From the IMG/VR virus record IMGVR_UViG_3300009537_002640, positions 142,496 to 206,495 of that record: a DNA stretch of 64,000 nucleotides; one strand, given 5' to 3'. Below, one piece after another: positions 1 to 37,187 of this stretch. The translations under genes and the position numbers were made by a program. The notes under the pieces were generated by a model. That model saw only the letters and a list, made by a program, of their open reading frames with translations. It did no database searches and was not told where the DNA came from. Numbering within the stretch: position 1 is the stretch's first letter; each line of letters starts with the position of its first letter.

Positions 1-939
1 GCGAGCACGGTGACTCAAACCAACAACTCTTACATTTGCAGGAATATGCACGGTGGATTCATAGGTATAGTTTCCTTCTTTGACGTATACAGTTCCGCCA
101 AGTGTAGCTAATGAATCTACAGCCATTTGCATAACAGAGCTGGTTGGCCCATAGTAGTTACCGTAACTGTCTGTACCATCTCCAACTGTAACAATATTTA
201 CATCATCTGCATCGACCAGGGTTGGGCCAGTGTATCTATAGAAAGTAGCGAATAGGCTGAACCTACCGCTTGCATTTGTTGTACCATCTCTGTCGCCGAA
301 CACATTAAATGGATTAAATACACTACCCTCCCCGCTTATTGGTGAACCAGTTAGTCTAACTATACCATTTGCATAGTCAACAGTCCAACGTGCGTCACTA
401 CCAATTCCATTTTGAGCTGTAGGGTCAGCAGTGATTGGAATAGCTCCATAGCCTACGTATGCATCTAGAGTTCCACCATTATCATAAGCGGGGAATAATG
501 CCAGTTCGAAACCACGAGTTGTGACGTCATCATCGGCTGCGTGACCTCTGCCGGGAGACAAATCAGGTGGCACCAAATGCTTTATGCGCACTCGTTCTAC
601 ATCTACCGGGTCATCAGACTCGGGAACGGAATGAACTGCCATGAATGTTTGTGAACTTTGAGTATCATCTATACTTGAAGATGGGACAGAATACAGTAAT
701 GTTTTATTGTGACGAGTTGCAACAGCACCGCCACCGTATCCATCGTCGCCGTAATCAGGAGAGGCAAAATTACTTAGAGCAGTAGGGGTCTCACTGAAGA
801 TATCATCTCTTAGTACAATAGTAGATGTACCAAAAGGCTCTTCGTGAACGGAGTAATCAGGACCCAGCGTATTTGCTTTACGCTGAGCAAGCTTATCTGC
901 TAAAGCAATTTTTTCCTTTTCCAAGTCAGTAGTTGACAT
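1..939 (-). CDS. Partial (runs off left edge) tail/tailspike-like protein; C-terminal part begins a right-handed beta-helix
   Basis: Not in the ORF track; hand-translated. ATG at 939 with GGAGAG upstream, open to position 1 (MSTTDLEKEK...GGTVYVKEGNYTYESTVHIPANVRVVG). GGTVYVKEGxY is typical of the start of pectate-lyase-like beta-helices. Contains DDGY and LDAY. Confidence 0.65.
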   Translation of the reverse strand, partial: MSTTDLEKEKIALADKLAQRKANTLGPDYSVHEEPFGTSTIVLRDDIFSETPTALSNFASPDYGDDGYGGGAVATRHNKTLLYSVPSSSIDDTQSSQTFMAVHSVPESDDPVDVERVRIKHLVPPDLSPGRGHAADDDVTTRGFELALFPAYDNGGTLDAYVGYGAIPITADPTAQNGIGSDARWTVDYANGIVRLTGSPISGEGSVFNPFNVFGDRDGTTNASGRFSLFATFYRYTGPTLVDADDVNIVTVGDGTDSYGNYYGPTSSVMQMAVDSLATLGGTVYVKEGNYTYESTVHIPANVRVVGLSHRAR

Positions 940-953
940 TTACACTCTCTCCA

Positions 954-3620
954 TTACGGTAACAACTGTAACAAAGTCATTATCTTTTGTTTTGAAACTT
1001 CTCTTTCTTCTTCGTGCTGTCCAAAGTATGTAACTTTAACAGCAATCTTATTTTCGGTATTAGCGTTATTTCTAGGGCCAAAAGTAAAAGGCACGGTAAA
1101 ATCACCGGCAGTTCCAGTTACTGCTCCTGCCAATGCCCCATCACCATTTTTATAATGTCCGGTTCTAAACAAACGCCCTATATCAAGCCAACCAGTGCTA
1201 TTAGAATCCCATCCAGGAATCTTTACTTCGATTTTTCCAAACCTATCTCTTTCGTTAGCTTGTTTGTACCTAATGTCCTCAAAAGATATTAGTGAATTAC
1301 CATCGCTCATAATTCTTAATTTACCACCGCTTATAGCATAACCTAAGCTAAATGTTCTGCGATAAGTTCTGTCACCAGTAAGAGCACTGTAGTCTCTGGT
1401 GGTGGAAGAATTATTGGGGACAATACCGTTGCCCACTGTGTAATCATCCTGTGGATAAATCAACCCAGGAATATGTGCTTCATCTGGCACAAATCTACCC
1501 CCGCACTGTAGACTGGGGGTTGATGCTATACTGTCTGTACTAGTTATCACAGTCGCAGCATATCCATCTGTAGGACCTAAAAACTCATGTGTGTCTACAA
1601 CCCTATAGCTTTCGTCTGTAAACCACTCAGTCGTATCTGTAGATCTGCTACTACTATATCCATTAACCAATATTCTGTTTACAAAATCCACGCCATACGC
1701 ATCATAACCATCGCCAGGGCCAAAAGGATAGTATATAGTTGCCCTAATATATCCCCTTGTAGAAAATACATTGGGAGCTGGATGCAACCTGGTATCTATT
1801 GATGGAATGCCGATAGCTACATCACCAGCATCTTTAGCAAAATAAAATGCCTGGTCGTTGTGATCAGGAAGATTTGATGCGGAATATTTAGTGTATCCAT
1901 CGTCAAGCAATTCGCTAGCGTCAACTTGGGCACCGAAGACACCTGCATCAGTACCATGCGGAAAATTAAACACATTGGTGTCGAATTTTAATATCTCTTC
2001 CCGCAAATATGTTTTGTTAAACACATTATTGTCAGAACGTAATTCCACTTCAAACTTATTATTATCTGTTACTATAGAAGTATAATAGGCAATTCCAGAA
2101 AGAAATACTAAATCGCTAGTGGGAGATATTGGATTATGAGCATCATTAATATCCGTTCTAACAGGAATTAAGTTTACATGTTCTATTCCTGGCCTAGTAG
2201 GACTGTTATCTACATAAAAATTAACTATGCGGGTATAGTTCTGCGGGTCCTCATTAAAGTCCGGAACTGAAGTTTCTAAATTGCTGTATACTTCAGCTAG
2301 TGCGGGTTCTCCTCCAAAATCGCCAGCAGTATCTTCAGTCACATAATGAACTATACGGTAAGCTGATAGATTATCGTTTGCGTCTGTTTCCGTGATACCT
2401 TCTGGGGAAGTTAGCTCCCCACCAACAATGTCAGGGTTTGAAAGTGGAATTAGATATCTAGCCATTTGGAGACGGCTAAAGTCATTCTCATAATCATCGA
2501 AAATGTTTTCTCCGCTAGCATTAATGTTAGAGCTATAATCTTCAAACACCGGTTTTCGATCGTAAAGCAATATACTATCGAAATTGGTTAATGTAGGGGT
2601 ATAAACCTGTTGTCCTGCAGCACGTATGTTTTCGTTAAATATATTCTTTAGGTTCAAGACTGCTATTGGGAAAAACTCAGACGCACCACGCAATTTACGC
2701 TGAAGTACCAAAGTTCCACGGTCAGCAGGGAAAATTATTCCGCTCATCATTGCCTGAAGTCTACTAGTACTATCTTTGTCAATTGCAGTCCTAGTAATAA
2801 ACTTAGTCTCTTTAAATCCAACCGATGGTAGGGAAAAGAATCCTGGAACAGCATCCATCCTGTATACTTCAAACTCATCTTCTTTAGGCGGAACCCGTAA
2901 TGGATCCGACGTTCTAGCTATTCGAATTTTTTTAGTTGTATCTCCACCAGATGATATAGTTTCTATATCACCAGCATCTAGTCCAGAAATATCTACAGGC
3001 GTGCCATCAGATTCTCCGGGTGCTCTCCAGGTTAGTGTTTCTGTTCCTACACCGCCTCCCATTTTGAGAAAGGCTCCAGTGCCAGGGTCGGTGTTGCTAC
3101 TTACGTCAATAATTTGAATTCCGCGAATACCAGCATTTCTTGGCTGAGTTTTCTTCATAACATTCTCGCCATTTCCGCCAGTGGTATTGAAAACATGCAA
3201 GCGTCCATAACCATCATACCAGTCAGGAATGCCATCGTTAGGAACTTTAGAATTGTCGAATCCTATTTGATCAGGACGAGGAGGAACTAGAGAGCCTAAT
3301 TCTGAAAGAACGCCCTCGACATCATCTTCGAAATAGTTGTCATCTGAGTCTAGCACAGAAATGGCACTTGCATCGTGAGCATCTTCTGGGTCAGCTTCGT
3401 GTGCTAAAATCAAGGCACGCACATCACCGATTTCATCCAGTCGGGCCCTAACGGTCGCAAATGTACCCGAAGGCTGAATGCCCAATTCCTGCTCGATTTT
3501 TACAATCGCGTCTCGCAGTCTATTGGGGACCTCAGCCCGAATTTCATCAATCTGATTACGGACCAGTGGTAAGGTCGCGTAACCATCAATTGCCTCGGGA
3601 TATACAGAAAAATTAGCCAT
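954..3620 (-). CDS. Virion structural protein (tail/baseplate-like), 888 aa
   Basis: Long ORF; HEADPEDAHDASAIS motif common in phage tail proteins; beta-rich; 5 DGY motifs; tail-gene context. Confidence 0.6.
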   Translation of the reverse strand: MANFSVYPEAIDGYATLPLVRNQIDEIRAEVPNRLRDAIVKIEQELGIQPSGTFATVRARLDEIGDVRALILAHEADPEDAHDASAISVLDSDDNYFEDDVEGVLSELGSLVPPRPDQIGFDNSKVPNDGIPDWYDGYGRLHVFNTTGGNGENVMKKTQPRNAGIRGIQIIDVSSNTDPGTGAFLKMGGGVGTETLTWRAPGESDGTPVDISGLDAGDIETISSGGDTTKKIRIARTSDPLRVPPKEDEFEVYRMDAVPGFFSLPSVGFKETKFITRTAIDKDSTSRLQAMMSGIIFPADRGTLVLQRKLRGASEFFPIAVLNLKNIFNENIRAAGQQVYTPTLTNFDSILLYDRKPVFEDYSSNINASGENIFDDYENDFSRLQMARYLIPLSNPDIVGGELTSPEGITETDANDNLSAYRIVHYVTEDTAGDFGGEPALAEVYSNLETSVPDFNEDPQNYTRIVNFYVDNSPTRPGIEHVNLIPVRTDINDAHNPISPTSDLVFLSGIAYYTSIVTDNNKFEVELRSDNNVFNKTYLREEILKFDTNVFNFPHGTDAGVFGAQVDASELLDDGYTKYSASNLPDHNDQAFYFAKDAGDVAIGIPSIDTRLHPAPNVFSTRGYIRATIYYPFGPGDGYDAYGVDFVNRILVNGYSSSRSTDTTEWFTDESYRVVDTHEFLGPTDGYAATVITSTDSIASTPSLQCGGRFVPDEAHIPGLIYPQDDYTVGNGIVPNNSSTTRDYSALTGDRTYRRTFSLGYAISGGKLRIMSDGNSLISFEDIRYKQANERDRFGKIEVKIPGWDSNSTGWLDIGRLFRTGHYKNGDGALAGAVTGTAGDFTVPFTFGPRNNANTENKIAVKVTYFGQHEEEREVSKQKIMTLLQLLP

Positions 3621-3683: not shown

Positions 3684-5396
3684 TTATAAGCCGCTAGGAT
3701 ATTGATATATAACATCCGTCTTATCGTGCCTTCTCATACGAAATTGCTGTCTTCCTGAGTCGCCCAAAACCAAAATGTTTCTGGTAACATCCAGCACTTC
3801 ATACCTAAATTCCTCAAAGAATTCACCGGTATTCTTATCTCTATTAAATAGTATGATTAAATCTCTGTCTTTTAGTGTAGGAATAGTGATTGTCCATGCT
3901 GTCAGTTCACTTGGGTGTGTAAGTCCTTGGTCTCCTTTGATTTCAAGGTCATCTGTGTATGGATGAACCCTTACCATTATCATTCCAAACACATTACGCC
4001 AGTGCTCTGAAATTGGACGGGTATTGTTATAACGGTCATATCCGCCGTCAAAACCTACACCATAACAATATGCACATCTGGTACGCTGGTGCTCCCGGCG
4101 CATACTGATACAAGCACAGCGTTTTCCTGTCCATTTTCTCTTCAATAAAATAGCAGGCATTCCGGTTACTTGTAGCTGTAGGTCTAGTCGAGCAAGATTT
4201 CTTTCCTGCAGGTCTAAACCGCGCACACCATTAAATTCGCCGCCTACATAGCTGTTTACACATCGCCCATCCAGCGTGTCTTGTAGGCTGGGGCGATGAT
4301 ATCCTTTAAAATCGTACGCAGGGAAATCTTCATTCTCAGCATCCGATATAGAAAAATCTGGGGTTATATCGTCGGCATTAGCTGCCCTATAACCATCCTC
4401 GTCTACATTGTAATCTCCAATAGCGTCGACATTGCGAGGAGTTCCATTATCTTCATGCCACGCCGCCGTATCGTTCAGTATTACAGTATTACCGTCCTCA
4501 ATACCTCTAAACAATTGAATGGCTGAACCAATTGCGTGGGTAGAGATTAAAGTAGTGAATGCGCCTCTTCCGGTGTCCTCTATATAGAAGTTCTCGCCAT
4601 CCTTAGATTCATATTGGATTACTTCGGAGCCAATATGTAAAAATCCTTTCTCAGGATATCCATTAGTGGTACTAACATTAATAGTTGCCCCGTAAGCATC
4701 AATGTCATTCTCTAGAGTTAAAACCTCTGGGTACTGATATAAATCCTCGCCTATTTGCTCAAGCTGAGTTAAGTCAAAATCGTTAGGGTCGTATTCAACC
4801 GCTCTTACTGCAAAGTATCTTAGTTTACCAGGCGGGACATTGATAACAACCTGGCGGGCTGTAGTAATTGCCCTTGGACCAGAATTAAAAACACCAAATC
4901 GAGTAGATGATACATAAATGTTGTAATGTATTTGTTTATTAGAGTCAGCAGGAACAGCCTCGCCCCAAGTTAGACGAAGCCCCATTCCATTTCCAACGTC
5001 TTCAATTCTACGCACTCCCACCAAATGCAACCAGGTAGGTTTTTCACGACAGCCAACATGTGCTGATGCTGCTTGCCCACCTGATGCTCCTGATGGAATA
5101 CCCGCTGGAGCCATTGTGAAACTATAGCGCTGAGTATTAGAGGTCATACCATCTTCAGCGACCCACTCCCATTGGTCATAATAAACGCCTGCATCTAGTG
5201 TTTTTGGAGAATCCCACGTAGCTTGATAAAAACCAGTGGACAAACGAGTAACTGGCAGTACGGCAATTAAGTTCCCACCAGACGCAGCATCATATATTCT
5301 AACCGCATTCACTGTGAATGGGTCGAACAAAGAGCCGTTCTCGTAGAACTTTATGCCGACATCTATTTCTTGTCCTATTAGACCACTGCGTGCCAT
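3684..5396 (-). CDS. Putative head-closure/neck protein with N-terminal Ig-like domain and Cys cluster, 570 aa
   Basis: N-terminal Ig/BppU-like strand pattern; C-terminal KRKWTGKRCAC...RCAYCYGVGF zinc-binding insert followed by a beta-rich domain resembling large-phage head-closure proteins. Confidence 0.55.
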   Translation of the reverse strand: MARSGLIGQEIDVGIKFYENGSLFDPFTVNAVRIYDAASGGNLIAVLPVTRLSTGFYQATWDSPKTLDAGVYYDQWEWVAEDGMTSNTQRYSFTMAPAGIPSGASGGQAASAHVGCREKPTWLHLVGVRRIEDVGNGMGLRLTWGEAVPADSNKQIHYNIYVSSTRFGVFNSGPRAITTARQVVINVPPGKLRYFAVRAVEYDPNDFDLTQLEQIGEDLYQYPEVLTLENDIDAYGATINVSTTNGYPEKGFLHIGSEVIQYESKDGENFYIEDTGRGAFTTLISTHAIGSAIQLFRGIEDGNTVILNDTAAWHEDNGTPRNVDAIGDYNVDEDGYRAANADDITPDFSISDAENEDFPAYDFKGYHRPSLQDTLDGRCVNSYVGGEFNGVRGLDLQERNLARLDLQLQVTGMPAILLKRKWTGKRCACISMRREHQRTRCAYCYGVGFDGGYDRYNNTRPISEHWRNVFGMIMVRVHPYTDDLEIKGDQGLTHPSELTAWTITIPTLKDRDLIILFNRDKNTGEFFEEFRYEVLDVTRNILVLGDSGRQQFRMRRHDKTDVIYQYPSGL

Positions 5397-5800: not shown

Positions 5801-8800
5801 TTAGTAGAAATCGTTCCAGGTTGTACCATCCCAACCCTGATGCTTCTTAGTAGATGTATTGAAAATTACCATGCCCTCAATTGGCTCTAGAGCGTCTCTT
5901 TCAGTTGTAGTAAGTCTTGGTGGTAAGAAGACACTCCCAACTGTTAGCTCATTACCCACATCTAGATTGCCATCGATGCCAGAATCTCCACCAACACTAA
6001 TTCCTGATGAGAAAGTTGTATAACCGTCAGAAGCTATATTGACTTGCTCTGCACCAGCTGTAATTAATGACAACTCATTTGCGCCAGCAGAACCTATTCC
6101 AGTGTCATAGTCAGACCAAGCAGGAACTAATGTAGGATTAGTTGCACTGGCTGCCTCATTCATTACTGTTCCAGAGCCACTTGTTGCGCCCGATATCTGA
6201 GATGCATTAATGAAGAATGCATTTATGCCCAGAGCAGCTATTCCTATCGTATCATCTTGAGTTTCATAAAACCCTGTATCGCCATCTCCAAATGATATTG
6301 TTGGAGTAGCAGCATCATTTTCTGAAGGTAGGGATAGTTTAGAACCTGTAACTGGAGCTTGTCCAATACCTATATTGCCAGATGTATCTATGGTTAAATG
6401 TGTATTAGTTCCTACTGTTGCATTGCTACCAATTTTGAATGCCTCGGAATCATCATTGTCAATACCTACAGTCCAATCCTGTGTAGCAGAAACACTCAGT
6501 TCTAGCTTGGGATCGCCGCCAGCTGATTGTGCCTCAGCCAAAAATACTGAATCGCTTCCAGCAGTAGAATTAGTGTTGTATACTCGAATGTCTGTATAGG
6601 CGCCATCATTAGCTTGTTGTACATCCCAAGTGGCAGCAGGAGCGGCAGCTATACCGGCATCACCACCAGTAGGGCCAATGCGCATACGAATATTACCACC
6701 AGGTATACTGCTATCCCCTATTACAAACTCTCCACCCAAAGATCTATCTAGCCCAACATACCATAAATCTCCTCCGCTTAGAGAGATATATGGGTCGCCA
6801 CCAGAAGTAGCTAAATCAAGTCTGGCATGACTACTGCTGCCTGAATCCAAATTGGCTATATTGGCAACTACAGATCCTACTGTGGTTTTGCGCATCGACC
6901 AATCCCAAATACCAGTAGTAGTGTGGCCTATTGCAATAAACCCTAGAGAGTCAATACGCATTACCTCACTACCAGCTGTTGATAGTGCTAGTACATCATC
7001 AGATGCCTCCCACCAGCCAGTATCACCGTCACCTAAATTTAATAGAGGAGTTGTTTCGCTTCCGGCGCCTGGTATATTTACAGCTGTAGCCCCACCAGTT
7101 TCAGTGATAGTCAGTCCTTCTACTCCGCCAGCTATTAGAGATATCGCGTCCGCTGCTCCTGAACCCACACCGGTATCCAAATCAAATCTAAAACAATATA
7201 CTGGATTGGTTGCAGTGCTTATTTCGTTACGCATATGCCAGCCACGAGTAGATTGCGCTGCGGCTAAGTCATCAAAACTAGCCCACCATCTAGATGTACC
7301 AACGGAACTGAAGTACACAGCATCGTCGGTAAGTTCGAAGAATCCAGTGTCACCATCACCAAAAGCTATAGTCGGTATCGCCTCGTTGTTCACAGACGGC
7401 ACTATTAAACGACTGCCACCCTGTACTTGTAAATCACCATAAGCATCAATTGTTGGTTGACCCGAGCCACTTGTAATGCGCAATCCTTCAATAGAATTAC
7501 CTATTAGGCTTACAGAACCTCCAGCGTCTATGTTTATATCACGAGTACCTAGAGCTTTTACTACACCAGGATCTGGCCATAACACAATGCCCTCTGAATC
7601 TACTTCTGCTTTAACTCCGGAGCCTGTACTAAATCCTAATCTATTGGATCCGATTCTGTATATTCCTGTATCTGTATCAGATAGGAATGAAATGCTAGGC
7701 AATACAGAGGTTCCATCTGCTACAAATAAACGCCCACCACCCTGAATATTGACATCGCCATAAGCATCTACGGTTGAATTATCGCCTTCAGTATTTCTAG
7801 TGAAACGCAAAGCCTCTTGCCCATCTACTATAGCAGATAGATTATATATACTTCCACCAGCACCTAGACCGGAATTTATACCGCTACCAGTTCTTACACT
7901 AGCATTAGTGTCTGATGGCGAACTAGCTGACAAATTACCACCACCAGCTGCAGAACCAAATTCTGATGATGTAAATGACCAAGCATTCGAACCACTTATA
8001 GATACACCTATTACGGTATCACTAAATGCATTAAATCCAGTATTTCCAGAGCTGCCGAAACCTATAGTTGGTGAAGAGAACCCTTCGACACCAGTTGTAT
8101 TCGGAAATATCAATCGATGATTCAATTGTAGGTTGTTGTTAACCCTATCAAAGTACAAGTCATTATCGCCAGCCAAAGTGCCGGAACTAGTAAAGAATGC
8201 CACATAGCCATCAGCACCTTCTTCTGCCGTAAGTCCACCACCTCCGCCGTAACCATCTAGAGCCTGTAGAATGACCTGAAATGTTTCTGATAGGTCATCG
8301 TTATTTATGGCTCCAGCTACATTTAGATCTCCATTAACATTTATGAATGGTGACCCAGTAGCATCAATTCTTATGCCCTCAATATTATTGGCGATGAGTG
8401 AAAGTTGACTTGTGCCAGCCGTACCAATACCAGTGCCAGAATCCAATGCATCTGGATTGAACGTAGGGGTGGTAGCAGTGGCATCAAAACCACGCATACT
8501 TGGGCCACCCGAAACAGTAGACGAATAATTGACACCGCTCCACGTAAATCTAGCAAAACCACCAAGAGATATTTGTATAGTGTCATCAGCAGATTCATAG
8601 AAGCCAGAATCACCATCACCAAATGTTATTGTAGGCGTTGATGGAGCATTTATCTGTGGGACAAAAAATCTGCTTCCAGTATTAACATGTAGTCCTGTGC
8701 TACTAACATAAGCTCGGGTACTTCCGGCTGTACCAATCTCTAGCTGATTAGTACTATGGTCGAAAATTATGTTTCCGCTCCAAGTTGAATCGGCATCAGC

Positions 8801-11800
8801 AAAAAGCAATGCTCCAAACCCAGTAGTGCTAGAGCCTATAGTAATTCCAACATTACTACCACCCTGGACAGTAAGATCATCATACAGAGCAGACGGAGTG
8901 CCACCATAGCTTGCACCCATAGTAACAGTAGTGGCACTACCTGATTCTGTTATTCGTATGCCTTCAACGCCACCAGCTACCAAGGACAATTGATTAGCAG
9001 CAGCTGAACCTATGCCAGTATCGGTATCGTTTCTACGCGGTACTAGTGTAGGATTGGTAGCGCTAGATATTTCATTCAATATACCTGGACCACCAGTATT
9101 GACATTTTCCATACCTATGCTAGAAAAATCGAATATCTTACTTCCACCAGTAGCAAGGCTTAGAACATTATCTAGAGCAGCATAAAAGCCAGTATCTCCA
9201 TCACCAAAATTTATGGTTGGTGTACTTGCAGTCCCACCAGTTGGAAAATTAACATCAGTTGATCCACCCGATTCAGTAATACGAAATGCCTCAACACCAC
9301 CAGCTGCAAAACCCAATATATCTGCACCGGCTCTAAACATACCAGTATCAAAATCTGATGCAGTGGCAAACGAGTATCCAGGAGTAGATGCAGAGCCACC
9401 AGCTGATGCTACAACGCCACTACTGGAGAACCATCTATCTGATGAATCTATTGTCCATTTCAAATTGCCAGATACGGAAAATGCAAGACTGGTAGAACCA
9501 AACGGAATGCCCATACCAGTTCCAGTGGCTGTATGAAACGAATACCCTGGAGTTGCTACTCCGCCACCACCACCAGCAAATAGACGACCCTCGACATGCA
9601 ACCCATCAGTAGGAGCAGTATCAACACCGGCATCTCCACTACCAATAACTACACCGCCAGCAACATCGAGTTTATTTAGTGGAGCAGTAGTTCCTATACC
9701 TAGTCGGTTATTAGGTCTATCCCAGAATAAATCGTTATCACCAGCTATACTATCACTACCAGTAAAGAAAGCAATATACCCATCAGCACCTTCGGTAGCT
9801 GATATGCCACCACCTCCGCCTCCACCAGCAGGGAAAGATGCTCCAGTACTAGAATTAAATTCAGCTACTGGGACACCATCATCGCTTAAGCACAAAGAGC
9901 CATCTTCAGTGACACTCCAAGTGAATGTGCGATTCGGCCTTCCTTCAGCAGTAGTAGAAACTATGTGCAATGATTCTGGTCCGAGATACAAGTCACGCCA
10001 ACGCAAATCAGGAGTGCCCAATCCCCACATATTATCCGTATGGGGCATCAAGTAACCATCAAAGTATCCATCGCCAGCTACATGCAGCTTAGCTTCAGGA
10101 GACCCAGTGCCAATGCCAACCTCTCCAGTAGTAGATAGCGTCATATTAACAACGCCACCAGAACGGAATCTTAGTTCTTCGTTAACATCGGCTGTTCCAT
10201 ATTGTACATAGTTGCCGGAATTTCTTAATAATACGGAGGAGGTGCCTATACGATAGTCAGAAGCTGTATTAATAGCGCCAGTAGTGGTAATTGAATGATT
10301 AGCTAATGCTACTGTTGGATCTTCGCCAAAACCTACTCTTCTGGCATCTGGACTTATAGATATTACTGGAGTACTACCAGCATATAGTCGCAAGAAACCT
10401 TGTGTGGTCCCGGGTGTCTTTTCAATCTTCCAGGAATAGTCCCGGCCAGTAGTTGTTTCAGCGTCAGTAGATATTATATGTATTGAATCCGTACCAAGAT
10501 ATAAGTCTCTCCATCGCAAATCAGGAGTACCTAATCCCCACATATCATCGGTACGTGGCATCAAGTAGCCGTCGAAATAACCATCGCCAGCTACATGTAA
10601 AAGTGCATCTGGAGCGTTAGTACTAATACCAACTCTCTGGGTATCTGTTATTCGTATAGCCTCTGTTCCACCAGTAACAAATCCTAATTGATTAATGGTA
10701 GCGCGATACATACCAGTATCGCCATCATTATTAAAGCCATAACTTACTACACTAGTGCTTCCAAAACCACTCTGTATTCTTGCTCCAGAATCAGCTGCGC
10801 TAAATATAGACGAGCTATTGGATATAGACCAAGCAGCCTGATTGTTTGTGGCAAAACGTAATGTTGCTCCGCTAGCATATATTCCAGTTCCATTACTAAA
10901 CGTAATTGCAGGATTGGTTGGTTCATCTAATGTTGGTAGAACTATTTGTTGTGCATAAACAGATCCAGTGATAGTAGAATCTCCAACCAAACTAGTGTCA
11001 CCATTTACAGTTACATACCCATCTTCAACACGGATGCTCTCAACTCCACCGGCAATCATAGATAATTGATCAGCACCAGATGAACCAATTCCAGTATTAG
11101 AGTCTGATTTATTAGGGACCAATGTAGGATTTGTAGCTGCAGCATTTTCACGCAAAAGTGCTGGTCCACTAGTTAAATCTGCTTGTATGCTAACATATGT
11201 GGTATACTGACCAGCGTCCCATGAGCCTCTAATAGACCCAAGGGTAGAAACAGCCAGGACATCATCACTACTTTCATAAAAGCCGGTATCAGTATCTCCA
11301 AAATTAATCGCAGGAAGACTGGCGGTTCCAGCAGACGAAAATGTAGTGTCTTGACTTATTACAACTGCAGCAGAGTATGCAGCAATTTTAGATCCTCCTC
11401 CAACAATAATAGCTACCTCTCCTGCGGCCCCGCCAATACCATTGCCGAAAGAACCCTTTCTGGGTATTATTGTCGGATTAGTACTTGATGAAGTCTCGTT
11501 TAGAAGCTGAGCCCCTACACTAAATGCAGAAAAGGAGCCACCTGACATCCTCCATGCTTCTGTACCATTAAAAGTGAACACAAAATCCGTAGTATCTAAA
11601 TCAATATTGTATGTAGAAGCAGAATCAAAAGATAATAAATCAACGTTAACTATGCTATTGCTGCCCATATCCAAGGAGTTACCCATAGTTAGGGTGCCAG
11701 ATATTGCAGTTTGTCCTATAACCCCTAGTCCTGCACCAACACTTAGGTATCCATCTGTACTAACAGTTATATTACCACTAGATTCAGATATTCTTAACCC

Positions 11801-20983: not shown

Positions 20984-21044
20984 AAAATGCGCGGATTTAT
21001 ATACCGCGCTGAAGCTTAATTGTGGCAGAATATACACCTCTGCC
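20984..21044 (-). promoter_or_regulatory. Two stem-loops in the leader of the cold-shock gene
   Basis: GGCAGA/TCTGCC (21024-21044) and GCGCGG/CCGCGC (20989-21009), the latter followed by AUUUU on the mRNA. Confidence 0.45.
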
Positions 21045-21060
21045 TACACTAATATGAGAA

Positions 21061-21070
21061 ATATTAGTAG
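21061..21070 (-). promoter_or_regulatory. Putative late promoter motif (CTACTAATAT)
   Basis: Intergenic TAYTAATA copy, 104 nt upstream of csp; forms an inverted repeat with ACTAATAT at 21048-21055. Confidence 0.55.
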
Positions 21071-21071
21071 T

Positions 21072-21371: not shown

Positions 21372-21374
21372 ATC

Positions 21375-22022: not shown

Positions 22023-22023
22023 T

Positions 22024-30322: not shown

Positions 30323-31261
30323 TTACTCTATTCCTCTTCCTGTGTATTCCATTCTAACCAAGCCCACTTGTGCTGCAGCTCCGTATGTATCGCTGCCATC
30401 GTGTACTCTCTCTACGTTTATTATTAGAATGTCACCAGCATTTATATCTAATGATGATATAGCTAAATTTTGCCCCGTATCGGTTAGCCTATTTGCTACT
30501 CCCGGGGACGCTTGAACAAATGAAACCGAAGTCATAGTGCTATCTACATCATCAGAATCACTTGTAAGGGATCTATATCGGATATTCCAGTGTACATCTC
30601 CTGCGCTTGCATTTCTCGGAGACCAGAATACCTTGACGACTATATCTGTCCCGAACACATAATCCTCTGGAACAGATGCAGAGTATCTCACTCTGCCTAC
30701 GCCGCTGGGTTTGTCTAAAAATCCAAGAACTGGGGAATCATTTACATGGCCTATTTGAACATTGCCATTTTTCATGCCTCCAAATATATCAAAATCCTTA
30801 TATTTGGAGAGGTCTTGACCAACACTAAAGCTGAGGTTTGCTACATATGCATCTAGTGACTCCAGGGCCTCTTGAACCGTATCTCCTTCTGCAAGGAAAG
30901 AGTTAGAGTCGTCATAGAGTACCTGGTAGCCATCTATCAGTCCATTTATAGATGCCCGCTCATCAATAACTTCCAGCACTATGCCGCTTGCTATTTCTAC
31001 CCGAGCTATCTTGGTGCTGAGAGTAGGAAAACCAGTGGTATTATCTAATACCAGCTGGTCATACTCATCTAGATAAACATAAAATGTAGCCGTTGCCCCG
31101 ACCCAGCTCGGATCAGACACATTCACAATGCCAGCAAAAGTCTTCCCGCTAGCGTAATTGCCGCCAGCGATATTTATCGCGTCGGCGCTAGCGTAGGACT
31201 TGGTAGCACGGAGGGCATCAAAATGCCCCTGTAACTGTCCTGAAGTGGGTTTATTGGTCAT
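30323..31261 (-). CDS. Tail-fibre-associated protein, 312 aa
   Basis: TVQEALESLDAY motif; C-terminal domain similar to that of the 963-aa protein. Confidence 0.65.
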   Translation of the reverse strand: MTNKPTSGQLQGHFDALRATKSYASADAINIAGGNYASGKTFAGIVNVSDPSWVGATATFYVYLDEYDQLVLDNTTGFPTLSTKIARVEIASGIVLEVIDERASINGLIDGYQVLYDDSNSFLAEGDTVQEALESLDAYVANLSFSVGQDLSKYKDFDIFGGMKNGNVQIGHVNDSPVLGFLDKPSGVGRVRYSASVPEDYVFGTDIVVKVFWSPRNASAGDVHWNIRYRSLTSDSDDVDSTMTSVSFVQASPGVANRLTDTGQNLAISSLDINAGDILIINVERVHDGSDTYGAAAQVGLVRMEYTGRGIE

Positions 31262-31580: not shown

Positions 31581-33374
31581 TTATGTTAATGTAGTGGAAT
31601 ATGTAGTTCCACTAATCCTTACTTTTAACTCCCGTGTTCCGCCGTTATCTGTTATCCAAACATCGCCGTCTTCTAGCGTTGTTGGGTCAGAAGCAAAAAC
31701 TGGGACATTGAGTGGGGCCAATTCTGTATCAGCTCCTGCTCGAATCTTATTAGCTACCTCAAACTCCTCAGCTACATATCCATCTCCCTGCACATATAGC
31801 TTGGCGCTTGGGTTATTTACGCCTATACCCAAATTGCCAACACTGGTTAGGCGTATATGCTCAGTAAAAACACCATCGTCCATCAGCTCAATTGCCAGAT
31901 AGGTATTCTCTGACGAATCGGTAGCATCCTCTGTGCCTGAAGTAATCCTACTGGCATTAAACAAGGCACCACCAGTATTCTCCAATCTGGTGAGTATGCC
32001 TGAGCCAATCCCGGTTAAAGCACCTATAGGGTGAGAGGTAGTTCTCTCTACAATGGTAGAATCTACTACTGTGCTTCTACTTGCTGTATCTTTCTGTATC
32101 AACAGAGTAGACTTAGTTTCATCGATTGATTTAACCCTCAATCCCTCTGCAGCTCCCTCATGATTCACATCCAGGGTGGGAGTTGGGTTGGTGCCTGCAC
32201 TTGTTCTCAATCTTAATGCAGAGCCAGTTGTTAAAGTCTGAGTAAACCTTATTTGGCCGTCGTCTACTGTTATGTTTTTAGCACCACTTGGACTATTATC
32301 GTAAGCGTTCTGTAGGTTGGTTGTTCCTCCACCTCCTCCGCCTAGAGAGCCGGGAAGAATCATAACATCAACTACAGCATCATAATCTACATTATCGGCG
32401 AACTCTATACTGGTAGTATCTCTTTCCACATAACATTGTGGAGAGAACTGAGCGACACCATTCAGGAAGACCAATAACCTATCTTTGCCTAATGGATATT
32501 CATAGCCGTCCAGAGTGTATACTGTATTAAATGGAGTATTATCTGCATCGGAACCATACTTTCTGATATGGTATACTTGTCCAGTAATCCCTATGCTCTG
32601 CAGATACCCATCAATCTCTGTTATGGCATCCTGGACATTGTTGGCAAAGATAATGCTGTTGCCAGAATCATCATAACCTATTTGATACGCATCTATATCT
32701 ACTCTAAGCTCAGGACAATCTTCAGTTGGTACAACTATCAGACCGTCGCCAGCTATACTCTGAATATCCAGAGATACCTGAGTATATCCTTCAACCGTCT
32801 CTACGTTTATATTACATCCAGCTATAACTTCGTAGCCATCCCCACTGCCTCCTTGGTGAGGGCCTACTCCGAACGCTACCAAATCTGGGTCTAAGTCTTC
32901 AGGAGCAAACTTAAGGAACTCTCTGATGGGCGCCCAGGCATAAGTTATTTGAGTCCTAAACCCAGGAGTGGTTACAACCGGTGTATAGGTCTTAATCTGA
33001 AATGTCTTATAGTTTATAGCATACTGGCCAGCAGAAGTAAGTGTTGTAGCAAAATCTACTTCGGTGGCAAATATAGCTGCTGCAGTAACACCAGCATCTT
33101 CGCTGGTAAACGTAACAGATGTGGTTTGTCCACCAGTAGCACCGCCTATATCATCTCTAGCAGCATTTAACACGCTGCCTTCTTCAGTTAGGCCAGCTCC
33201 CGGGCCGCGCTGTAGGGTTATCAATGAACCAGGTGGCAAGGATACAATATCAGCGGCAGTGACTAATTCAAGAGTCACTTCCTCTACGATACGCTCATCA
33301 CCACTATGTTGGTGTCCGGTTCGAGCAGCAACTCGCTCTAAACGAACAACCCTGGTATCATTAATAACGGTCAT
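31581..33374 (-). CDS. Tail-fibre-like protein, 597 aa
   Basis: NVQDAITEIDGY, TTNLQNAYDN and GNLGIGVNNPSAKLYVQGDGY fibre motifs. Confidence 0.7.
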   Translation of the reverse strand: MTVINDTRVVRLERVAARTGHQHSGDERIVEEVTLELVTAADIVSLPPGSLITLQRGPGAGLTEEGSVLNAARDDIGGATGGQTTSVTFTSEDAGVTAAAIFATEVDFATTLTSAGQYAINYKTFQIKTYTPVVTTPGFRTQITYAWAPIREFLKFAPEDLDPDLVAFGVGPHQGGSGDGYEVIAGCNINVETVEGYTQVSLDIQSIAGDGLIVVPTEDCPELRVDIDAYQIGYDDSGNSIIFANNVQDAITEIDGYLQSIGITGQVYHIRKYGSDADNTPFNTVYTLDGYEYPLGKDRLLVFLNGVAQFSPQCYVERDTTSIEFADNVDYDAVVDVMILPGSLGGGGGGTTNLQNAYDNSPSGAKNITVDDGQIRFTQTLTTGSALRLRTSAGTNPTPTLDVNHEGAAEGLRVKSIDETKSTLLIQKDTASRSTVVDSTIVERTTSHPIGALTGIGSGILTRLENTGGALFNASRITSGTEDATDSSENTYLAIELMDDGVFTEHIRLTSVGNLGIGVNNPSAKLYVQGDGYVAEEFEVANKIRAGADTELAPLNVPVFASDPTTLEDGDVWITDNGGTRELKVRISGTTYSTTLT

Positions 33375-33599: not shown

Positions 33600-36500
33600 T
33601 TATGTTAAGTACGCCAATGCAATCATATCTACCTGTGGCGCCTTACCAGATGCATTGGTTGTTAACGTTATCTCTATATAGATGTCTTTATCTATAATAT
33701 CTGTAGCTGGAGGGTCGAACGCTATGTTGATATCCTTATTCTTGCCAAACTTAAAACCAGATTGAGGGGATACTTCGAAGTCAGTGGTTAAGTACCAGTT
33801 GGCATTTGTGTGTGGAGGAATAGCTGCATAAGGATCATCTGTGCTTATACGAATATCTATCTGGCTACTATTATTACCCAAGTCAAATCTAGTGGAATTT
33901 TGGTCCCAGTCAGCAGGAGCTGTAATATTAACATTCCTATACGATGTACCAGCAGCAAATCCAAAGACCATAAATCGTATATTGGACCCCTGAACTCCTG
34001 TAGGATTAGTGGTCAGTCTTATCCTCTTGCTGCGCCACACATATTTGGCAGTGCTAGCTCCAGTAGGATTAGCTTCAGTTCCCCCGTGTGAATTAGGAAC
34101 ACTTATTTTAGAGCCCCAGAAGTTTGCAGCGAACAAATCAACTCCAACCGTACCAGTATTGTTCTCTGTAAGCTGGTCATTAGATAGGTGCTGCGAAAAA
34201 GCCTCTGGATTAGCCAGATCTATAAGCGTCAAGTTAGTAAAAGCACCATCGTTCACATAGGCCACAATACCATTGTTGGCATCCCAAGCTTGTATTTCAG
34301 CGTCTGTAACTCCTAAAGGAACAGCACGGGCATTTTGAGCGACAGTAAATTGAGATAAACTACCTCCGTCACAGAATATAGTGCCATTAGAGCCGTCTAC
34401 CTCAGAGCCACGAACAGTTCTATATACAGCTGAAGAGTTATCATCTACAATGCGAATCCTTCTGTTTATCATAAACGCTCTAAATGAATCAGAAGATACC
34501 TGAAATGCACCACCTGAAGTTCCATCAGTAATAAATGCAATCTCACTAGCAATGTTATCTATACCATTTGCTGATAATACATCTTCATTAGTTGCCTCGT
34601 CGTAACAGGTTGAGGCTTCAGTAACAGTGGCATCATTTCCAGTAGCATGGAAAATGGACGCTCTGCCGATAGCTCTTCCTTGGTCATCATTTCTGGTACT
34701 TCCAAGATTGGTAACAAATGGGCCTCTATACTGAAAAGTATCTAGCTGTGGAATAGCTACAGCCGAACTCGCTCCCCAAGGAGAGGCATCAAAGGTACAC
34801 GAATCTCCTGCGTCTATAGGGGCATTCATTCTGACCGTGACGTATACGTTTTCTCCATGCCTTGTAAGAATATCATTGGCTGTTATGCTCTGAACACCGG
34901 AACTAAAGTTATGTTCGCATGCTTGTTCAGTATTGTCCTGGTTGTCTGCATCGTCATCCATTACATTGTAGCCGTCGTAACCGTCGTTCAGATATCCATC
35001 GATAATATCTACGTCTATTTGAACATCTAAGATTTCTGGCGGAACTACATCTATACAGAACTCCTCATCATTATTATCAATAGGGTCTGCATCCAGCGGC
35101 AACTTATGGCTACAGTTTATAGCGGTATGCAAAATAAACTCTGTGCACCCACTTGTATCAGGAGGATTGCTCACTGTCAAAGTAGCTGTAAACGTATCAC
35201 CTGGAAGTGAGCCACTTAATGGAGACAGAGTTCCTTTATTTGGGTCGGCTATAGTTATTTCTGGAAGCTCACTCAAACAATCATTAAAAATGAATCTTAC
35301 TCCATGAGTTCCATCACATAGAATTGGAGAGGTTAGGTTGTATGCACCCGTATTATCTCTTCGCCATCTAATAGAACTAATCCTAGGCGGCGTATCATCT
35401 AATCTAATCTGTAAGTTTCTGGTAGTTTCTGAACAGTTAGATTGCTTTCTCGCCCTAATTCTAAAATTGGTAGTTGTGAGAGAAGTGCACCCCTGGTTTT
35501 CTTCAATGCCAGAGGCGCCTAGATCCCACGTTATCTTCTTATTCACCGCATAAACGGTAGGGTCAGGAATAGTGAACCTACCGTTCGGCGAGGAATAAAG
35601 AATTTCGGTGAAGTCAGAGACATCCATGTAGGCATCTACTGACTCCCCGAACTTAAGGCAGAACTGGCCAGCTGGGTAAATTAAGTCGAGGCTCTCATCA
35701 AATGATTCGATTACGGGAAAATCGTTATCAAATAATACTAGAGCATCGCCCACTGTAGAAGTACTTTCATTGGCTATATTGCCAAGGAAATCTTCAGCGG
35801 TTACATTAATGTCGGCGTACCCATTGGGCTGGCCAGTTCTTGCCACAACTGTCCCCGTCCAGATGCCCGAGCCAGGAGAAGTCTCGGTTAAGGCAACAGT
35901 TGATTGTATTGCATCACCTGCATCGACATCTACAGATGTAGCTAATGCGTATCCATCCGTGCTGGTTGTGACGGTGACGTCAAAGCTTTGTCCAGCTCGC
36001 ACGGCGGTTTGTTGAGTACCTGTAAAAGCACAAATGGGGTACTCGAATGTTATGCTTATTATATTAGGCCCTAAGGTGCGTCTCTCTACTACGATGGTCT
36101 TAGTGTCATTAGTGTGACTTCCCCCAAATATGAAATAGAAATATCCATCAGGGAAACCATCTACAGAATCAAATTCTGGGTCATCGAAACTAAATACTCC
36201 GGTAGTAAATTGAACCTCGCCATCCTTGCGATTGCCAGAGATAAATGTCTCGGTAGCAGTCGCGACCTCTTCAAATAAAAATTCGCCCTCAGTCAACACG
36301 GTGGTCGGCTGAAGGCTGTCGATTAGTGTAGCGTTCTTAAGAACGGTATATGTAATTGTGGGAAGAGGCTCACCGTCTATGGTGTGCCTTAGAGTTACGC
36401 CCCTTATTTCTAGGTCGCCTGAACCCATAACAAATTGGTTAAAGCCATACCTTGTGATGGAGCCGGAAGTTGCTGGGCCCGCAACATTGCCTAAGGTTCC

Positions 36501-37187
36501 TGAGCCTGCGCCAGAAACCTCTAATTCATCTACTTCTATAAAGGGATAGTAGCCATCTCCGGAAGAGACAACTATTGTGTCGCCGTCACCATCTGTTAAC
36601 TCAGTCCAACTGCGCTCTACACCAAACGGATCTACAAAGTAGAACTCGTCATTCTTGATATAGATACCACCTTTACCAAGTTCAAATGGGTTGGTGTCAA
36701 GGTTAGGAAGAACTAGACCATCGCCTAATTCTAATTGACAGGCGATATAAGCATCGCCTAATACCTGGAGCGCAAGTCCACAAGGGCTCGCATGCTCTAC
36801 AGATAGAACGGGCTCGTCAAAGAATTCGTCTGATACACTAAATTGCACTAGAGGAAGCGCAGGAGAAGGGTTGGAAGAGAACACACTAAGGCCCCTTCCG
36901 ATGTTTTCGGAATTATCAATATCTACTGCAGCATCAGCGGTAGATGTATTTCCAGTTTGTTGTACGAAAAGAGCAGAGCCAGTGCCTGCGTTGATAAGAG
37001 TAAAGACATCTCCAGCACCAGTGCCGGTCTTATTAATACCAGACGCAGGAGATGTTAAAGTACGAATCGCCGTAGTGATCAGATACTGTGGATGGTCATC
37101 ATCCAATAATCCCGTCAGTAAACCATGATCATTATAACCGTCACCGCCCGTGCCTCCCGTAAAACGTCTGCCGACAAACTTAGACAC
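33600..37187 (-). CDS. Large tail/fibre-associated protein with Ig-like domains, 1195 aa
   Basis: GTG start with AGGAG RBS; N-terminal DHGLLTGLLDDDHPQY motif typical of phage fibres; 7 DGY; many scattered Cys. Confidence 0.7.
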   Translation of the reverse strand: MSKFVGRRFTGGTGGDGYNDHGLLTGLLDDDHPQYLITTAIRTLTSPASGINKTGTGAGDVFTLINAGTGSALFVQQTGNTSTADAAVDIDNSENIGRGLSVFSSNPSPALPLVQFSVSDEFFDEPVLSVEHASPCGLALQVLGDAYIACQLELGDGLVLPNLDTNPFELGKGGIYIKNDEFYFVDPFGVERSWTELTDGDGDTIVVSSGDGYYPFIEVDELEVSGAGSGTLGNVAGPATSGSITRYGFNQFVMGSGDLEIRGVTLRHTIDGEPLPTITYTVLKNATLIDSLQPTTVLTEGEFLFEEVATATETFISGNRKDGEVQFTTGVFSFDDPEFDSVDGFPDGYFYFIFGGSHTNDTKTIVVERRTLGPNIISITFEYPICAFTGTQQTAVRAGQSFDVTVTTSTDGYALATSVDVDAGDAIQSTVALTETSPGSGIWTGTVVARTGQPNGYADINVTAEDFLGNIANESTSTVGDALVLFDNDFPVIESFDESLDLIYPAGQFCLKFGESVDAYMDVSDFTEILYSSPNGRFTIPDPTVYAVNKKITWDLGASGIEENQGCTSLTTTNFRIRARKQSNCSETTRNLQIRLDDTPPRISSIRWRRDNTGAYNLTSPILCDGTHGVRFIFNDCLSELPEITIADPNKGTLSPLSGSLPGDTFTATLTVSNPPDTSGCTEFILHTAINCSHKLPLDADPIDNNDEEFCIDVVPPEILDVQIDVDIIDGYLNDGYDGYNVMDDDADNQDNTEQACEHNFSSGVQSITANDILTRHGENVYVTVRMNAPIDAGDSCTFDASPWGASSAVAIPQLDTFQYRGPFVTNLGSTRNDDQGRAIGRASIFHATGNDATVTEASTCYDEATNEDVLSANGIDNIASEIAFITDGTSGGAFQVSSDSFRAFMINRRIRIVDDNSSAVYRTVRGSEVDGSNGTIFCDGGSLSQFTVAQNARAVPLGVTDAEIQAWDANNGIVAYVNDGAFTNLTLIDLANPEAFSQHLSNDQLTENNTGTVGVDLFAANFWGSKISVPNSHGGTEANPTGASTAKYVWRSKRIRLTTNPTGVQGSNIRFMVFGFAAGTSYRNVNITAPADWDQNSTRFDLGNNSSQIDIRISTDDPYAAIPPHTNANWYLTTDFEVSPQSGFKFGKNKDINIAFDPPATDIIDKDIYIEITLTTNASGKAPQVDMIALAYLT

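Follow-up and report, generated by a model that had tools for sequence, protein, structure and literature searches.

Why is a single tripeptide, Asp-Gly-Tyr (DGY), so frequent in the tail and fibre genes of an uncultured jumbo phage? The question was raised by an earlier note on a stretch of 64,000 nucleotides (the window; positions 142,496 to 206,495 of the 206-kb contig IMGVR_UViG_3300009537_002640), which counted about 70 DGY in the predicted tail, neck and fibre proteins and proposed that they signal post-translational decoration or crosslinking of the virion exterior. The observation held and proved stronger than stated. The interpretation is only partly supported, as the surroundings and the behavior of the motif are in agreement with a glycosylation sequon, but there is no direct evidence that any virion protein is modified.

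Enrichment of DGY in peripheral virion proteins

Recounting of the ORFs at 1-37187 showed 72 DGY in 11,726 aa, whereas 3.7 are expected from composition and 12.4 from a dipeptide Markov model, and all counts per ORF given in the note were exact. DGY is the most over-represented tripeptide in these proteins, makes up 72 of 92 xGY tripeptides and holds 18% of all tyrosines. The first and the last residue are strict, since DGF was found twice, DGW not at all, EGY once and NGY three times, but the glycine can be replaced by alanine (DAY 17 times, against 2.7 expected). The ORFs at 37208-63470 hold 2 DGY in 8,296 aa against 1.2 expected, which is background and not depletion. The null is well calibrated: 172,143 aa of unrelated bacterial ORFs gave 17 DGY against 17.3 expected, and the T4 long tail fibre proteins gp34-38 gave none in 3,091 aa.

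When the analysis was extended along the contig, 22 peripheral tail proteins were found to hold 85 DGY (4.27 expected), about twenty times more than by chance. The outer baseplate holds 9 against 0.72 and the decoration-like proteins 2 against 0.11. In contrast, head proteins hold 0 against 1.06, core tail proteins 0 against 0.64 and the enzymes of the sugar pathways 1 against 2.61; head, sheath, tube and other core tail proteins and 54 sugar-pathway enzymes together hold 1 against about 4.5. In 37,131 aa of cytoplasmic proteins of relatives 6 DGY were present against 5.6 expected. A similar frequency in cytoplasmic proteins had been named beforehand as an outcome that would speak against a modification signal, and it was not observed. 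However, cytoplasmic proteins are not significantly depleted of DGY, so there is no sign of avoidance. The division made in the note between surface and internal proteins needs correction, as the major capsid protein (38935-40038; phrog_2522, E 1e-78) and the true tail sheath (857 aa, outside the window) are both exterior and have no DGY.

Fifteen different 9-mers encode the motif, their codon use matches that of the genes overall and the opposite strand carries only 2 copies, which shows that selection acts on the protein. Repeats explain only part of the enrichment. Of 74 sites, 35 fall into families of clearly related repeats, 22 of them into one family, but collapsing of sites with similar flanks still left 39 independent contexts, about 10 times the expectation.

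Proteins that carry the motif

The proteins listed here by window position all lie on the minus strand. The giant fibre protein (5801-17236, 3811 aa) holds 33 DGY, shows a weak match to the Pfam End_tail_spike stalk at aa 2213-2252 and has a precomputed PTL_trimer hit on record. Within it, aa 81-458 (15863-16996) form a segmented coiled-coil rod with 16 DGY, most of which are spaced 27 or 34 residues apart and each of which ends a helix in heptad register. Hydrophobic residues peak at positions -1, -5, -8, -12 and -15, and the register shifts after the Tyr.

A 275-aa fibre-like protein (25578-26405) carries 7 DGY, with one in each of three consecutive 9-residue units (aa 121-147). Its C-terminal ∼95 aa are a conserved beta-hairpin domain, the only part that folds with confidence in AlphaFold2. 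Modules are shuffled among the fibre proteins, and the N-terminal modules of the adjacent 329-aa fibre-like protein (26409-27398, 3 DGY) are shared with homologs of the 275-aa ORF. The 1195-aa fibre-like protein (33600-37187) also has 7 DGY, including a cluster of three within 11 residues in an acidic stretch (34968-35000); only its aa 388-599 resemble a sheath outer domain, and it is not the main sheath. Further carriers are a 963-aa fibre protein (27412-30303, 5 DGY, two of them at helix ends) and a 597-aa fibre-like protein (31581-33374, 4 DGY), for which two sites are kept in one orthologue (L007).

In an 888-aa tail protein (954-3620, 5 DGY), comparison with one orthologue (L084) showed 2 conserved sites, 2 unique to this protein and 2 unique to the orthologue. 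Positions 1-939 encode the N-terminal 313 aa of a 2180-aa tail protein that runs off the window, with 1 DGY inside the window and 4 in the whole protein. One DGY each is present in a 570-aa tail protein with a weak baseplate-wedge match (3684-5396) and in a 312-aa tail ORF (30323-31261), while three tail ORFs of 286, 423 and 193 aa (22884-25581) hold 1, 2 and 1, respectively. The stretch 17251-22884 inside the fibre block holds six ORFs, of which three are enzymes without DGY: an M91-like peptidase (17251-17772), a metallophosphoesterase (21375-22022) and a patatin-like phospholipase (22024-22884). A 301-aa ORF in this stretch (18826-19731) has 1 DGY, which is kept in the L005 and L006 orthologues; the L015 orthologue also has one and the L011 orthologue has none.

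On the head side, a 251-aa protein next to the capsid gene (40165-40920), decoration-like by position, has its DGY at 40714-40722. The DGY at this aligned position is invariant in 36 of the 37 nearer orthologues, directly after a conserved helix and before an indel-rich loop, but is absent there in the roughly 40 more distant orthologues. The second copy, at 48474-48482, lies on a hairpin turn of a 231-aa head-module protein (48024-48719), where near relatives have DGY or DAY and distant relatives D-x-N or G-P-N. Therefore, the fold of these proteins does not need the motif.

The same turnover was observed in larger families. The 940-aa baseplate protein family has 13 DGY columns, of which only one loop is shared between subclades, whereas the other clades have TGT, DDT, NRT, GGE or NIR elsewhere, indicating that different subclades gained the motif independently. 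Nevertheless, each protein keeps 3-6 copies against about 0.3 expected, and the 2185-aa family shows the same pattern. In the AlphaFold2 model of the 940-aa protein (pLDDT 77), 10 of 13 DGY columns are coil, three are directly after helices and two lie in a loop with pLDDT below 50. Once present the motif is conserved, as 15 of 18 sites are kept at 56% overall identity. Tandem DGY arrays vary in copy number, with up to six or more units, some with a spacer residue.

A sugar-synthesis island adjacent to the tail genes

The note had suggested that transferases be sought elsewhere in the genome, and indeed a glycosylation island of at least 40 kb starts 50 bases after the last tail gene on the same strand. 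It holds nine glycosyltransferases in its first 10 kb, PseB-, PseC-, PseH- and PseG-like enzymes of a pseudaminic-acid-like pathway, three NeuB/PseI-like synthases, CMP-transferases, TagF-like transferases and a pyruvyl transferase. No flippase, polymerase or lipid-carrier transferase is on record in it. The arrangement is conserved in three deep subclades (A, B and C), all of which are DGY-rich. The first gene, encoding a 401-aa GT4 glycosyltransferase, has orthologues in all three, while the rest of the island varies.

The favored reading, with a probability of about 0.4, is that DGY, with DAY as a minor variant, is a short linear motif in the fibres, the outer baseplate and two head-surface proteins of a clade of uncultured jumbo myoviruses, and that it is most likely the recognition and acceptor site of the cytoplasmic glycosylation machinery of the phage. 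In this view the tyrosine hydroxyl would be the acceptor, the Asp two residues upstream and the small middle residue would be the recognition determinants, and the 401-aa GT4 is the best candidate for the priming enzyme. The motif is placed where a tyrosine can be presented, at helix C-termini, at turns that already had a Gly and in flexible loops, and in the coiled-coil rods, where about a quarter of the sites sit in a precise register, it also has a plain structural role as the helix stop. The analysis itself established the enrichment and its restriction to one class of proteins, selection at the protein level, conservation together with positional turnover, the tandem arrays, the placement in loops and at helix ends and the adjacent conserved island. 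That the island acts on virion proteins, that DGY is what it reads and that Tyr is modified is inferred. Tyrosine O-glycosylation is rare and is not known to have been reported for a phage virion, and the island could instead modify DNA or the host envelope. Every relative seen has both DGY and the island, with no DGY-rich clade without the enzymes and none with the enzymes but without DGY, so shared descent could explain the co-occurrence. In addition, the capsid shell and the sheath, the largest exposed surfaces, have no DGY, and some tyrosines may be partly buried, since 22 sites place the Tyr where a coiled-coil core residue would fall and at some turnover sites an aromatic residue was already present (EEF or EEY changing to DGY).

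Alternative readings and related systems

It remains possible, though somewhat less likely, that DGY is a purely structural idiom that nothing reads or modifies: a helix C-cap plus the first residue of a trimeric beta-layer in segmented coiled coils, the start of foldon-like hairpins, or a tight Asp-Gly turn followed by a strand-forming Tyr in beta-helical rungs. At 22 sites, about a quarter, the upstream pattern is an exact a/d heptad, with hydrophobic residues in 95% at position -1, 77% at -5, 86% at -8, 50% at -12 and 64% at -15; the Tyr falls where position d would be and the register then jumps. Spacings are 9, 23, 27 and 34 residues, that is 7n+2 or 7n+6, and exactly these insertions were shown to produce beta-layers (Hartmann et al., 2016, PMC4786415). 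In these alpha/beta coiled coils, helical segments in heptad register are interrupted by 2- or 6-residue insertions in the pattern a-b-c followed by three beta residues, of which the middle one is small and hydrophobic. Beta-layers are common in phage fibres, and the same paper lists examples with an aromatic first residue: P22 gp26 (D-Y-V-S), T4 fibritin (G-Y-I-P) and T7 gp17 (S-F-V-A). Here the residue after the Tyr is usually A, L or V, and DGY often arises at turns that already had a Gly. However, the published consensus sequences are K-A-D and [aliphatic]-A-T-K-x-[DE], and DGY is not among them. The model explains only the 22 or so helix-end sites, not the loop sites, the arrays or the clade specificity. 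A structural benefit should be universal, yet the T4 fibres have none and unrelated proteins sit at expectation. Phe, Trp, Asn and Glu substitutes are almost absent, orthologues with the same fold, including those of the sister clade, lack DGY at the same positions, and position turns over while copy number is maintained. The motif also sits in Gly-rich, acidic and low-confidence loops and occurs in a non-fibrous multidomain protein.

It is unlikely that DGY is a docking motif for another phage-encoded reader, such as an assembly chaperone or a cementing or partner protein. The clade specificity, strict residues and positional turnover call for a trans-acting reader but do not say which one. 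No candidate reader was identified, up to 33 copies in one protein and arrays of variable length are unusual for a stoichiometric docking site, and the large adjacent enzyme island offers a simpler reader. Slightly less likely still is a metal-binding or cross-linking site, in which Asp and Tyr would coordinate Ca or Fe, or dityrosine or isoaspartate links would harden the fibres. Some copies lie in Asp-rich stretches, among them 34968-35000 and tandem arrays, the 940-aa protein has dockerin-like Ca-loop repeats near one DGY, and Asp-Gly is chemically prone to isomerisation. However, the Asp residues at -2 and -4 that define DxDxDG loops are not enriched (1.6-fold and 0.8-fold), no oxidase or peroxidase was seen and most sites have hydrophobic or small neighbours. 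An artefact of internal repeats, shared modules or a DNA-level signal is contradicted by the 39 unrelated contexts, by the 39 DGY that remain against 2.4 expected when the giant fibre is excluded, by the diverse codons and by the independent gains at non-homologous positions.

In mycobacteriophages, the phage reportedly encodes its own glycosyltransferases and glycans are attached to virion proteins in the cytoplasm, at the C-termini of the capsid and tail-tube subunits (Freeman et al., 2023, as cited in PMC12619734). Here the capsid protein and the tube-like protein have no motif, the candidate carriers are fibres, outer baseplate and decoration-like proteins, the candidate acceptor is Tyr within a defined tripeptide, and the island, for which the evidence is from sequence alone, is far larger and includes a nonulosonic-acid pathway. 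The short bacterial sequons D/E-X-N-X-S/T (Campylobacter PglB) and D-(S/T)-(A/I/L/V/M/T) (Bacteroidota O-glycosylation) are likewise motifs of three to five residues with a required acidic residue just upstream of the acceptor, which sit in exposed loops and are free to move during evolution. Those systems act in the periplasm from lipid-linked glycans on Asn, Ser or Thr, whereas here no lipid-carrier enzymes were seen, the substrates assemble in the cytoplasm and the acceptor would be Tyr. The cytoplasmic GT4 enzymes SdgA/SdgB, on Ser-Asp repeats, and GtfA/B, on serine-rich repeat proteins, modify many copies of an acidic-plus-hydroxyl repeat of variable number in fibrous surface proteins before export or assembly, but their acceptor is Ser, and the similarity of the 401-aa GT4 to Gtf1 (4PQG) is weak and generic (E 7e-4). 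In flagellin glycosylation islands (pseudaminic or legionaminic acid pathways plus transferases) the acceptors are Ser or Thr without a strict sequon, and no Maf-type transferase was recognised here. They resemble the arrangement proposed here in that a Pse-like sugar pathway is encoded next to the genes of the filament it decorates, and that glycosylation is cytoplasmic and occurs at many sites.

Distribution and strictness of the DGY motif

All genes in the last 64 kb of the 206,495-bp viral contig IMGVR_UViG_3300009537_002640 lie on the minus strand. The major capsid protein is encoded at 38935-40038 (phrog_2522, E 1e-78), and at the DNA level its gene resembles the capsid gene of Bacillus phage G. 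Everything at 1-37187 belongs to a block of large tail proteins, most of which could not be annotated, and no cultured phage was found to carry similar fibres.

The earlier note reported that D-G-Y saturates predicted surface proteins, and this observation was confirmed, its counts per ORF being exact. The ORFs at 1-37187 contain 72 DGY in 11,726 aa, whereas 3.7 are expected from composition and 12.4 from dipeptide frequencies. DGY is the most over-represented tripeptide in these ORFs, makes up 72 of 92 xGY and holds 18% of all tyrosines. When the giant fibre was excluded, 39 copies remained against 2.4 expected. The composition null is sound, since 172,143 aa of unrelated bacterial ORFs gave 17 copies against 17.3 expected; the phage T4 proteins gp34-38 contained none in 3,091 aa. 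Phage G was also considered as a control, but its tail genes are not next to its head genes and the stretch examined held no fibres. Fifteen different 9-mers encode the motif, their codon use is like that of the genes overall, and the plus strand holds only two copies in any frame. Therefore, selection acts on the protein. Clustering of the sites by flank similarity resulted in one family of 22 helix-end sites, a few small families and 34 singletons, which leaves 39 independent contexts in the tail block.

To determine which proteins carry the motif, the contig was followed upstream. The DGY-rich block continues for six more genes, among which the proteins of 2180, 1040 and 1702 aa have 4, 4 and 5 copies, respectively. 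These are followed by the true tail sheath (857 aa, phrog_2839 and phrog_279), a tube-like protein, a tube initiator, a 1581-aa protein and others, a set of 6,025 aa without any DGY. Three outer baseplate proteins of 1075, 2185 and 940 aa are enriched again. For this genome, 85 copies were counted against 4.27 expected in 22 peripheral tail proteins (16,472 aa), 9 against 0.72 in the 3 outer baseplate proteins (4,200 aa) and 2 against 0.11 in 2 decoration-like proteins (482 aa). In contrast, 0 were counted against 1.06 expected in 22 head and other proteins (7,814 aa), 0 against 0.64 in 11 core tail proteins (6,025 aa), 0 against 0.18 in three enzymes inside the fibre block (674 aa) and 1 against 2.61 in 54 sugar-pathway enzymes (12,626 aa). 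The dividing line is therefore not exterior against interior, as the earlier note had proposed, because the capsid shell and the sheath are exterior and have none; it runs between peripheral appendage or decoration proteins and everything else.

The 1195-aa ORF at 33600-37187 is not the main sheath. Only its aa 388-599 resemble a sheath domain, it matches phiKZ-like sheath proteins weakly and over one segment only, and its N-terminus is shared with a fibre-like protein in the relative L007. The real sheath, with a C-terminal sheath domain, was found about 54 kb further along in gene order (2118-4691 of L086, a stretch of the same contig), so that an unusually long block of fibre genes sits between the head genes and the sheath. 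Relatives with a capsid identity of 75% or less at first seemed DGY-poor, however, those loci simply contain no fibre genes and their baseplate proteins are DGY-rich.

The motif is strict. DGY occurs 72 times, against DGF 2, DGW 0, DGH 0, EGY 1, NGY 3 and SGY 1, and DAY, the only tolerated variant, occurs 17 times against 2.7 expected. Leu is 4.5-fold enriched just before the motif, and A, L and V are 2.4- to 2.9-fold enriched just after it. A DNA pattern for three tandem DGY, searched in bacterial and archaeal genomes, returned simple-sequence repeats in unrelated places.

Helix-end sites and positional turnover

In 22 sites the upstream sequence is a clean heptad pattern, with hydrophobic residues at position -1 in 95% of the sites, at -5 in 77%, at -8 in 86%, at -12 in 50% and at -15 in 64%. 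This reads as Leu(a)-Asp(b)-Gly(c)-Tyr, with the Tyr where position d would be, and the next hydrophobic positions are out of register. In the giant fibre (aa 81-458) most of the spacings are 27 or 34 residues, a spacing of 23 also occurs among the 22 sites, and in the 275-aa ORF (25578-26405) three units follow each other at 9 residues. Spacings of 27 or 34 and of 9 residues equal 7n+6 and 7n+2, and such insertions of 6 or 2 residues were shown to turn a trimeric coiled coil into a beta-layer, with phage fibres listed that have an aromatic first layer residue (Hartmann et al., PMC4786415). The residue after Tyr is A in 9, G in 4 and L in 4 of the 22 sites, which is compatible with a small hydrophobic middle residue but not strict. 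A helix-end role is accepted locally for about a quarter of the sites, although it is inferred from sequence, as the rod region was predicted only as a monomer, at a pLDDT of 30-50.

Sequence searches of solved structures with the giant fibre, the 963-aa ORF and a profile of the helix-end repeat found no PDB relative. Among cultured phages, neither the fibre rod nor the 940-aa baseplate protein had a match. AlphaFold2 gave a confident model of the 275-aa ORF only for its C-terminal domain. Homologs of this ORF share this well-conserved domain of about 95 aa, made of beta-hairpins reminiscent of YD repeats, whereas their N-terminal parts are different combinations of the same few short modules, each bounded by DGY, which points to module shuffling among fibre genes.

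A fold element does not explain the whole pattern. The enrichment is clade-specific, since T4 fibres and unrelated proteins lack it. The decoration-like protein has 76 orthologs in the capsid-anchored loci, and at the aligned position 36 of the 37 nearest have DGY, directly after a conserved helix and before an indel-rich loop, while its neighbors vary freely. The remaining, more distant orthologs have Gly-rich loops and no DGY at that position. Similarly, the 231-aa head protein carries DGY or DAY on a hairpin turn where distant relatives have D-x-N-G or G-P-N-G. The fold therefore does not need the motif.

The motif also moves. Orthologs of the 940-aa baseplate protein from three subclades (A, B and C), about 30% identical, keep 3-6 DGY each against about 0.3 expected, yet of 13 DGY columns only one loop is shared between subclades. 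At the other columns the other clades have TGT, DDT, NRT, GGE or NIR, often around a Gly that was already there. The 2185-aa family gave 25 columns, of which three are shared. Once present, however, a site is kept: 15 of 18 sites are conserved between genomes at 56% identity, where about 18% would be expected for an average triplet. Tandem arrays of up to six or more units, with or without a spacer residue and with variable copy number, occur at one locus of the 2185-aa family, and the 1195-aa ORF has three copies within 11 residues. In the AlphaFold2 model of the 940-aa protein (pLDDT 77, pTM 0.69) 10 of the 13 columns are coil, three are directly after different helices, one gained in each subclade, and two lie in a loop with pLDDT below 50. 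A Foldseek search with this model gave no meaningful match. A motif that is strict, specific to one clade and one protein class, conserved where it stands yet repeatedly gained elsewhere, points to something in these phages that reads it.

A sugar island directly after the tail genes

Fifty bases after the 940-aa baseplate gene, on the same strand, a sugar island, the candidate reader of the motif, begins and runs for at least 40 kb, about a fifth of the contig (contig about 55,000-95,000; 1169-20996 of contig stretch L093, and stretches L105 and L143). Nine glycosyltransferases lie in its first 10 kb and one more, a GT2, at its far end. The island contains a 401-aa GT4, six GT2 (one of 711 aa with two GT2 domains) and a second GT4, PseB-, PseC-, PseH- and PseG-like enzymes, GlmS, three NeuB/PseI-like synthases, two CMP-sugar synthetase-like proteins, a small cytidylyltransferase, two TagF-like glycerophosphotransferases, a pyruvyl transferase, and acetyl- and several methyltransferases. 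The Pse-like matches fall below the equivalog cut-offs of NCBIfam, so the sugar is Pse-like and not proven pseudaminic acid. No flippase, polymerase, ABC exporter or lipid-carrier transferase is on record in the island, which fits soluble cytoplasmic acceptors, although many island genes have no annotation.

The order of tail genes followed by the island holds in every relative where the flank reaches. It was found in subclade A, in subclade C, where the first GT4 matches at E about 1e-74, and in subclade B, where the island follows after four more tail genes and a LAGLIDADG homing endonuclease gene, which sits exactly between the last tail gene and the first glycosyltransferase (13233-14132 of L142, a subclade B stretch). 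In subclade B the first enzyme is a fusion whose N-terminal half is orthologous to the 401-aa GT4 (E 7e-78). The rest of the island differs between subclades. The GT4 family is confined to these phages, with 179 proteins at E of 1e-20 or better. Island-side proteins of 14 relatives are at background for DGY, with 6 copies against 5.56 expected in 37,131 aa.

The large GT2 (L093, 4421-6556) matches only generic GT2 domains in cultured phages. Its conserved N-terminal domain of about 200 aa (aa 1-200) has no family match and recurs at the front of a different GT2 in subclade B (L142, 16375-17886, aa 7-208), which makes it a candidate substrate-recognition domain. A pattern-based scan for the large GT2 added only one further contig, therefore its absence elsewhere is not informative.

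Readings of the motif and further genes of the contig

The earlier note's interpretation, post-translational decoration or crosslinking of the virion exterior, is partly supported. Its suggested search for sugar-transferring enzymes elsewhere in the genome was positive, and one finding that would have spoken against it, a similar DGY frequency in cytoplasmic proteins, was not observed. The motif behaves like a sequon: the acidic residue two positions before the acceptor recalls D/E-X-N-X-S/T, and the repeated arrays next to GT4 enzymes recall Ser-Asp and serine-rich repeat adhesins. However, nothing shows a modification, and there is no negative control, since every relative seen has both the motif and the island; as the GT4 family is confined to this clade, there is no independent case either. 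Moreover, tyrosine-linked glycans are rare, the shell and the sheath are bare, some tyrosines sit where a core or a pre-existing aromatic residue sat, and the island could serve modification of DNA or of the envelope. The reading of DGY as a glycosylation site is therefore tentative, with a probability of about 0.4. The enrichment, its restriction to one protein class, the turnover of positions and the adjacent conserved island rest on the sequence analysis, whereas a covalent glycan on the motif, the tyrosine as acceptor, the exposure of the sites, the activity of the island enzymes on virion proteins and a trimeric beta-layer at the helix ends are inferred.

In a more specific form of this reading, which is slightly more doubtful, a conserved GT4 would prime the tyrosines and a variable island of about 40 kb, a fifth of the genome, would build a glycan containing a pseudaminic-acid-like sugar. 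The fibres, outer baseplate and capsid decoration of a widespread clade of aquatic jumbo phages would then be coated with sugar, and the number and position of sites would evolve as in the glycan shields of animal viruses. If the motif is a glycosylation site, it would be the first sequence-defined sequon for virion glycosylation in a phage and a rare case of tyrosine-linked glycosylation. It would also explain why these phages spend roughly a fifth of their genome on sugar chemistry. Glycosylation sites could then be predicted from sequence alone across hundreds of uncultured genomes, which raises the question whether the coat serves protection from proteases or grazers, masking, or adhesion.

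A purely structural reading is the closest rival and only somewhat less probable than the glycosylation-site reading; a fold element fits the helix-end sites but does not explain the whole pattern. If the motif is only structural, it is still a clean new sequence signature for helix stops and turns in trimeric fibres, and would pose the question of why one clade alone uses it. Recognition by another reader, such as a chaperone or partner protein, is less likely still. Metal binding or cross-linking is improbable, and for a DxDxDG or EF-hand-type calcium loop Asp is not enriched, at 1.6-fold at -2 and 0.8-fold at -4 relative to the Asp of DG. Calcium-loop, RTX and collagen-like readings all fail on position-specific residues; for a collagen-like Gly-X-Y helix, most DGY are single, and arrays have at most about 6 units, many broken by a fourth residue. 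An artefact of repeats or a DNA-level signal is very unlikely, the latter being ruled out by codon diversity.

Literature searches for DGY with tail fibres and for a DGY motif gave no papers, and searches on tyrosine glycosylation and on nonulosonic acids in phages gave nothing relevant. A 2025 paper describes aquatic 'moraphages' of 200-307 kb with four core glycosyltransferase families and predicted Bacteroidota hosts (PMC12619734); the present lineage may correspond to, or neighbor, this group, and the paper does not report the motif. Phage virion glycosylation is known from mycobacteriophages, as cited there. Compared with these, the present case would differ by a defined tripeptide, a tyrosine acceptor, fibre and decoration carriers, and a very large island.

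Further proteins of the contig carry recognizable features. Three enzymes sit inside the fibre block, an M91-like zinc peptidase (17251-17772), which also weakly matches an eCIS core domain, a calcineurin-like phosphoesterase (21375-22022) and a patatin-like phospholipase (22024-22884), and these may be virion-associated enzymes used during entry. The 1702-aa tail protein (13137-18245 of contig stretch L083) contains a right-handed beta-helix region (Pfam Beta_helix, E 3e-10), as in tailspike depolymerases. In the 940-aa outer baseplate protein (10001-12823 of contig stretch L092) two dockerin- or EF-hand-like calcium-loop repeats of the D-V-N-x-D-G-V-I-D type lie at aa about 605-690, and one of them is followed by a DGY. 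Two very large head-module ORFs of 1342 and 1290 aa (50761-54789 and 59598-63470) each contain a short segment resembling a head maturation protease, while the rest has no recognizable family.
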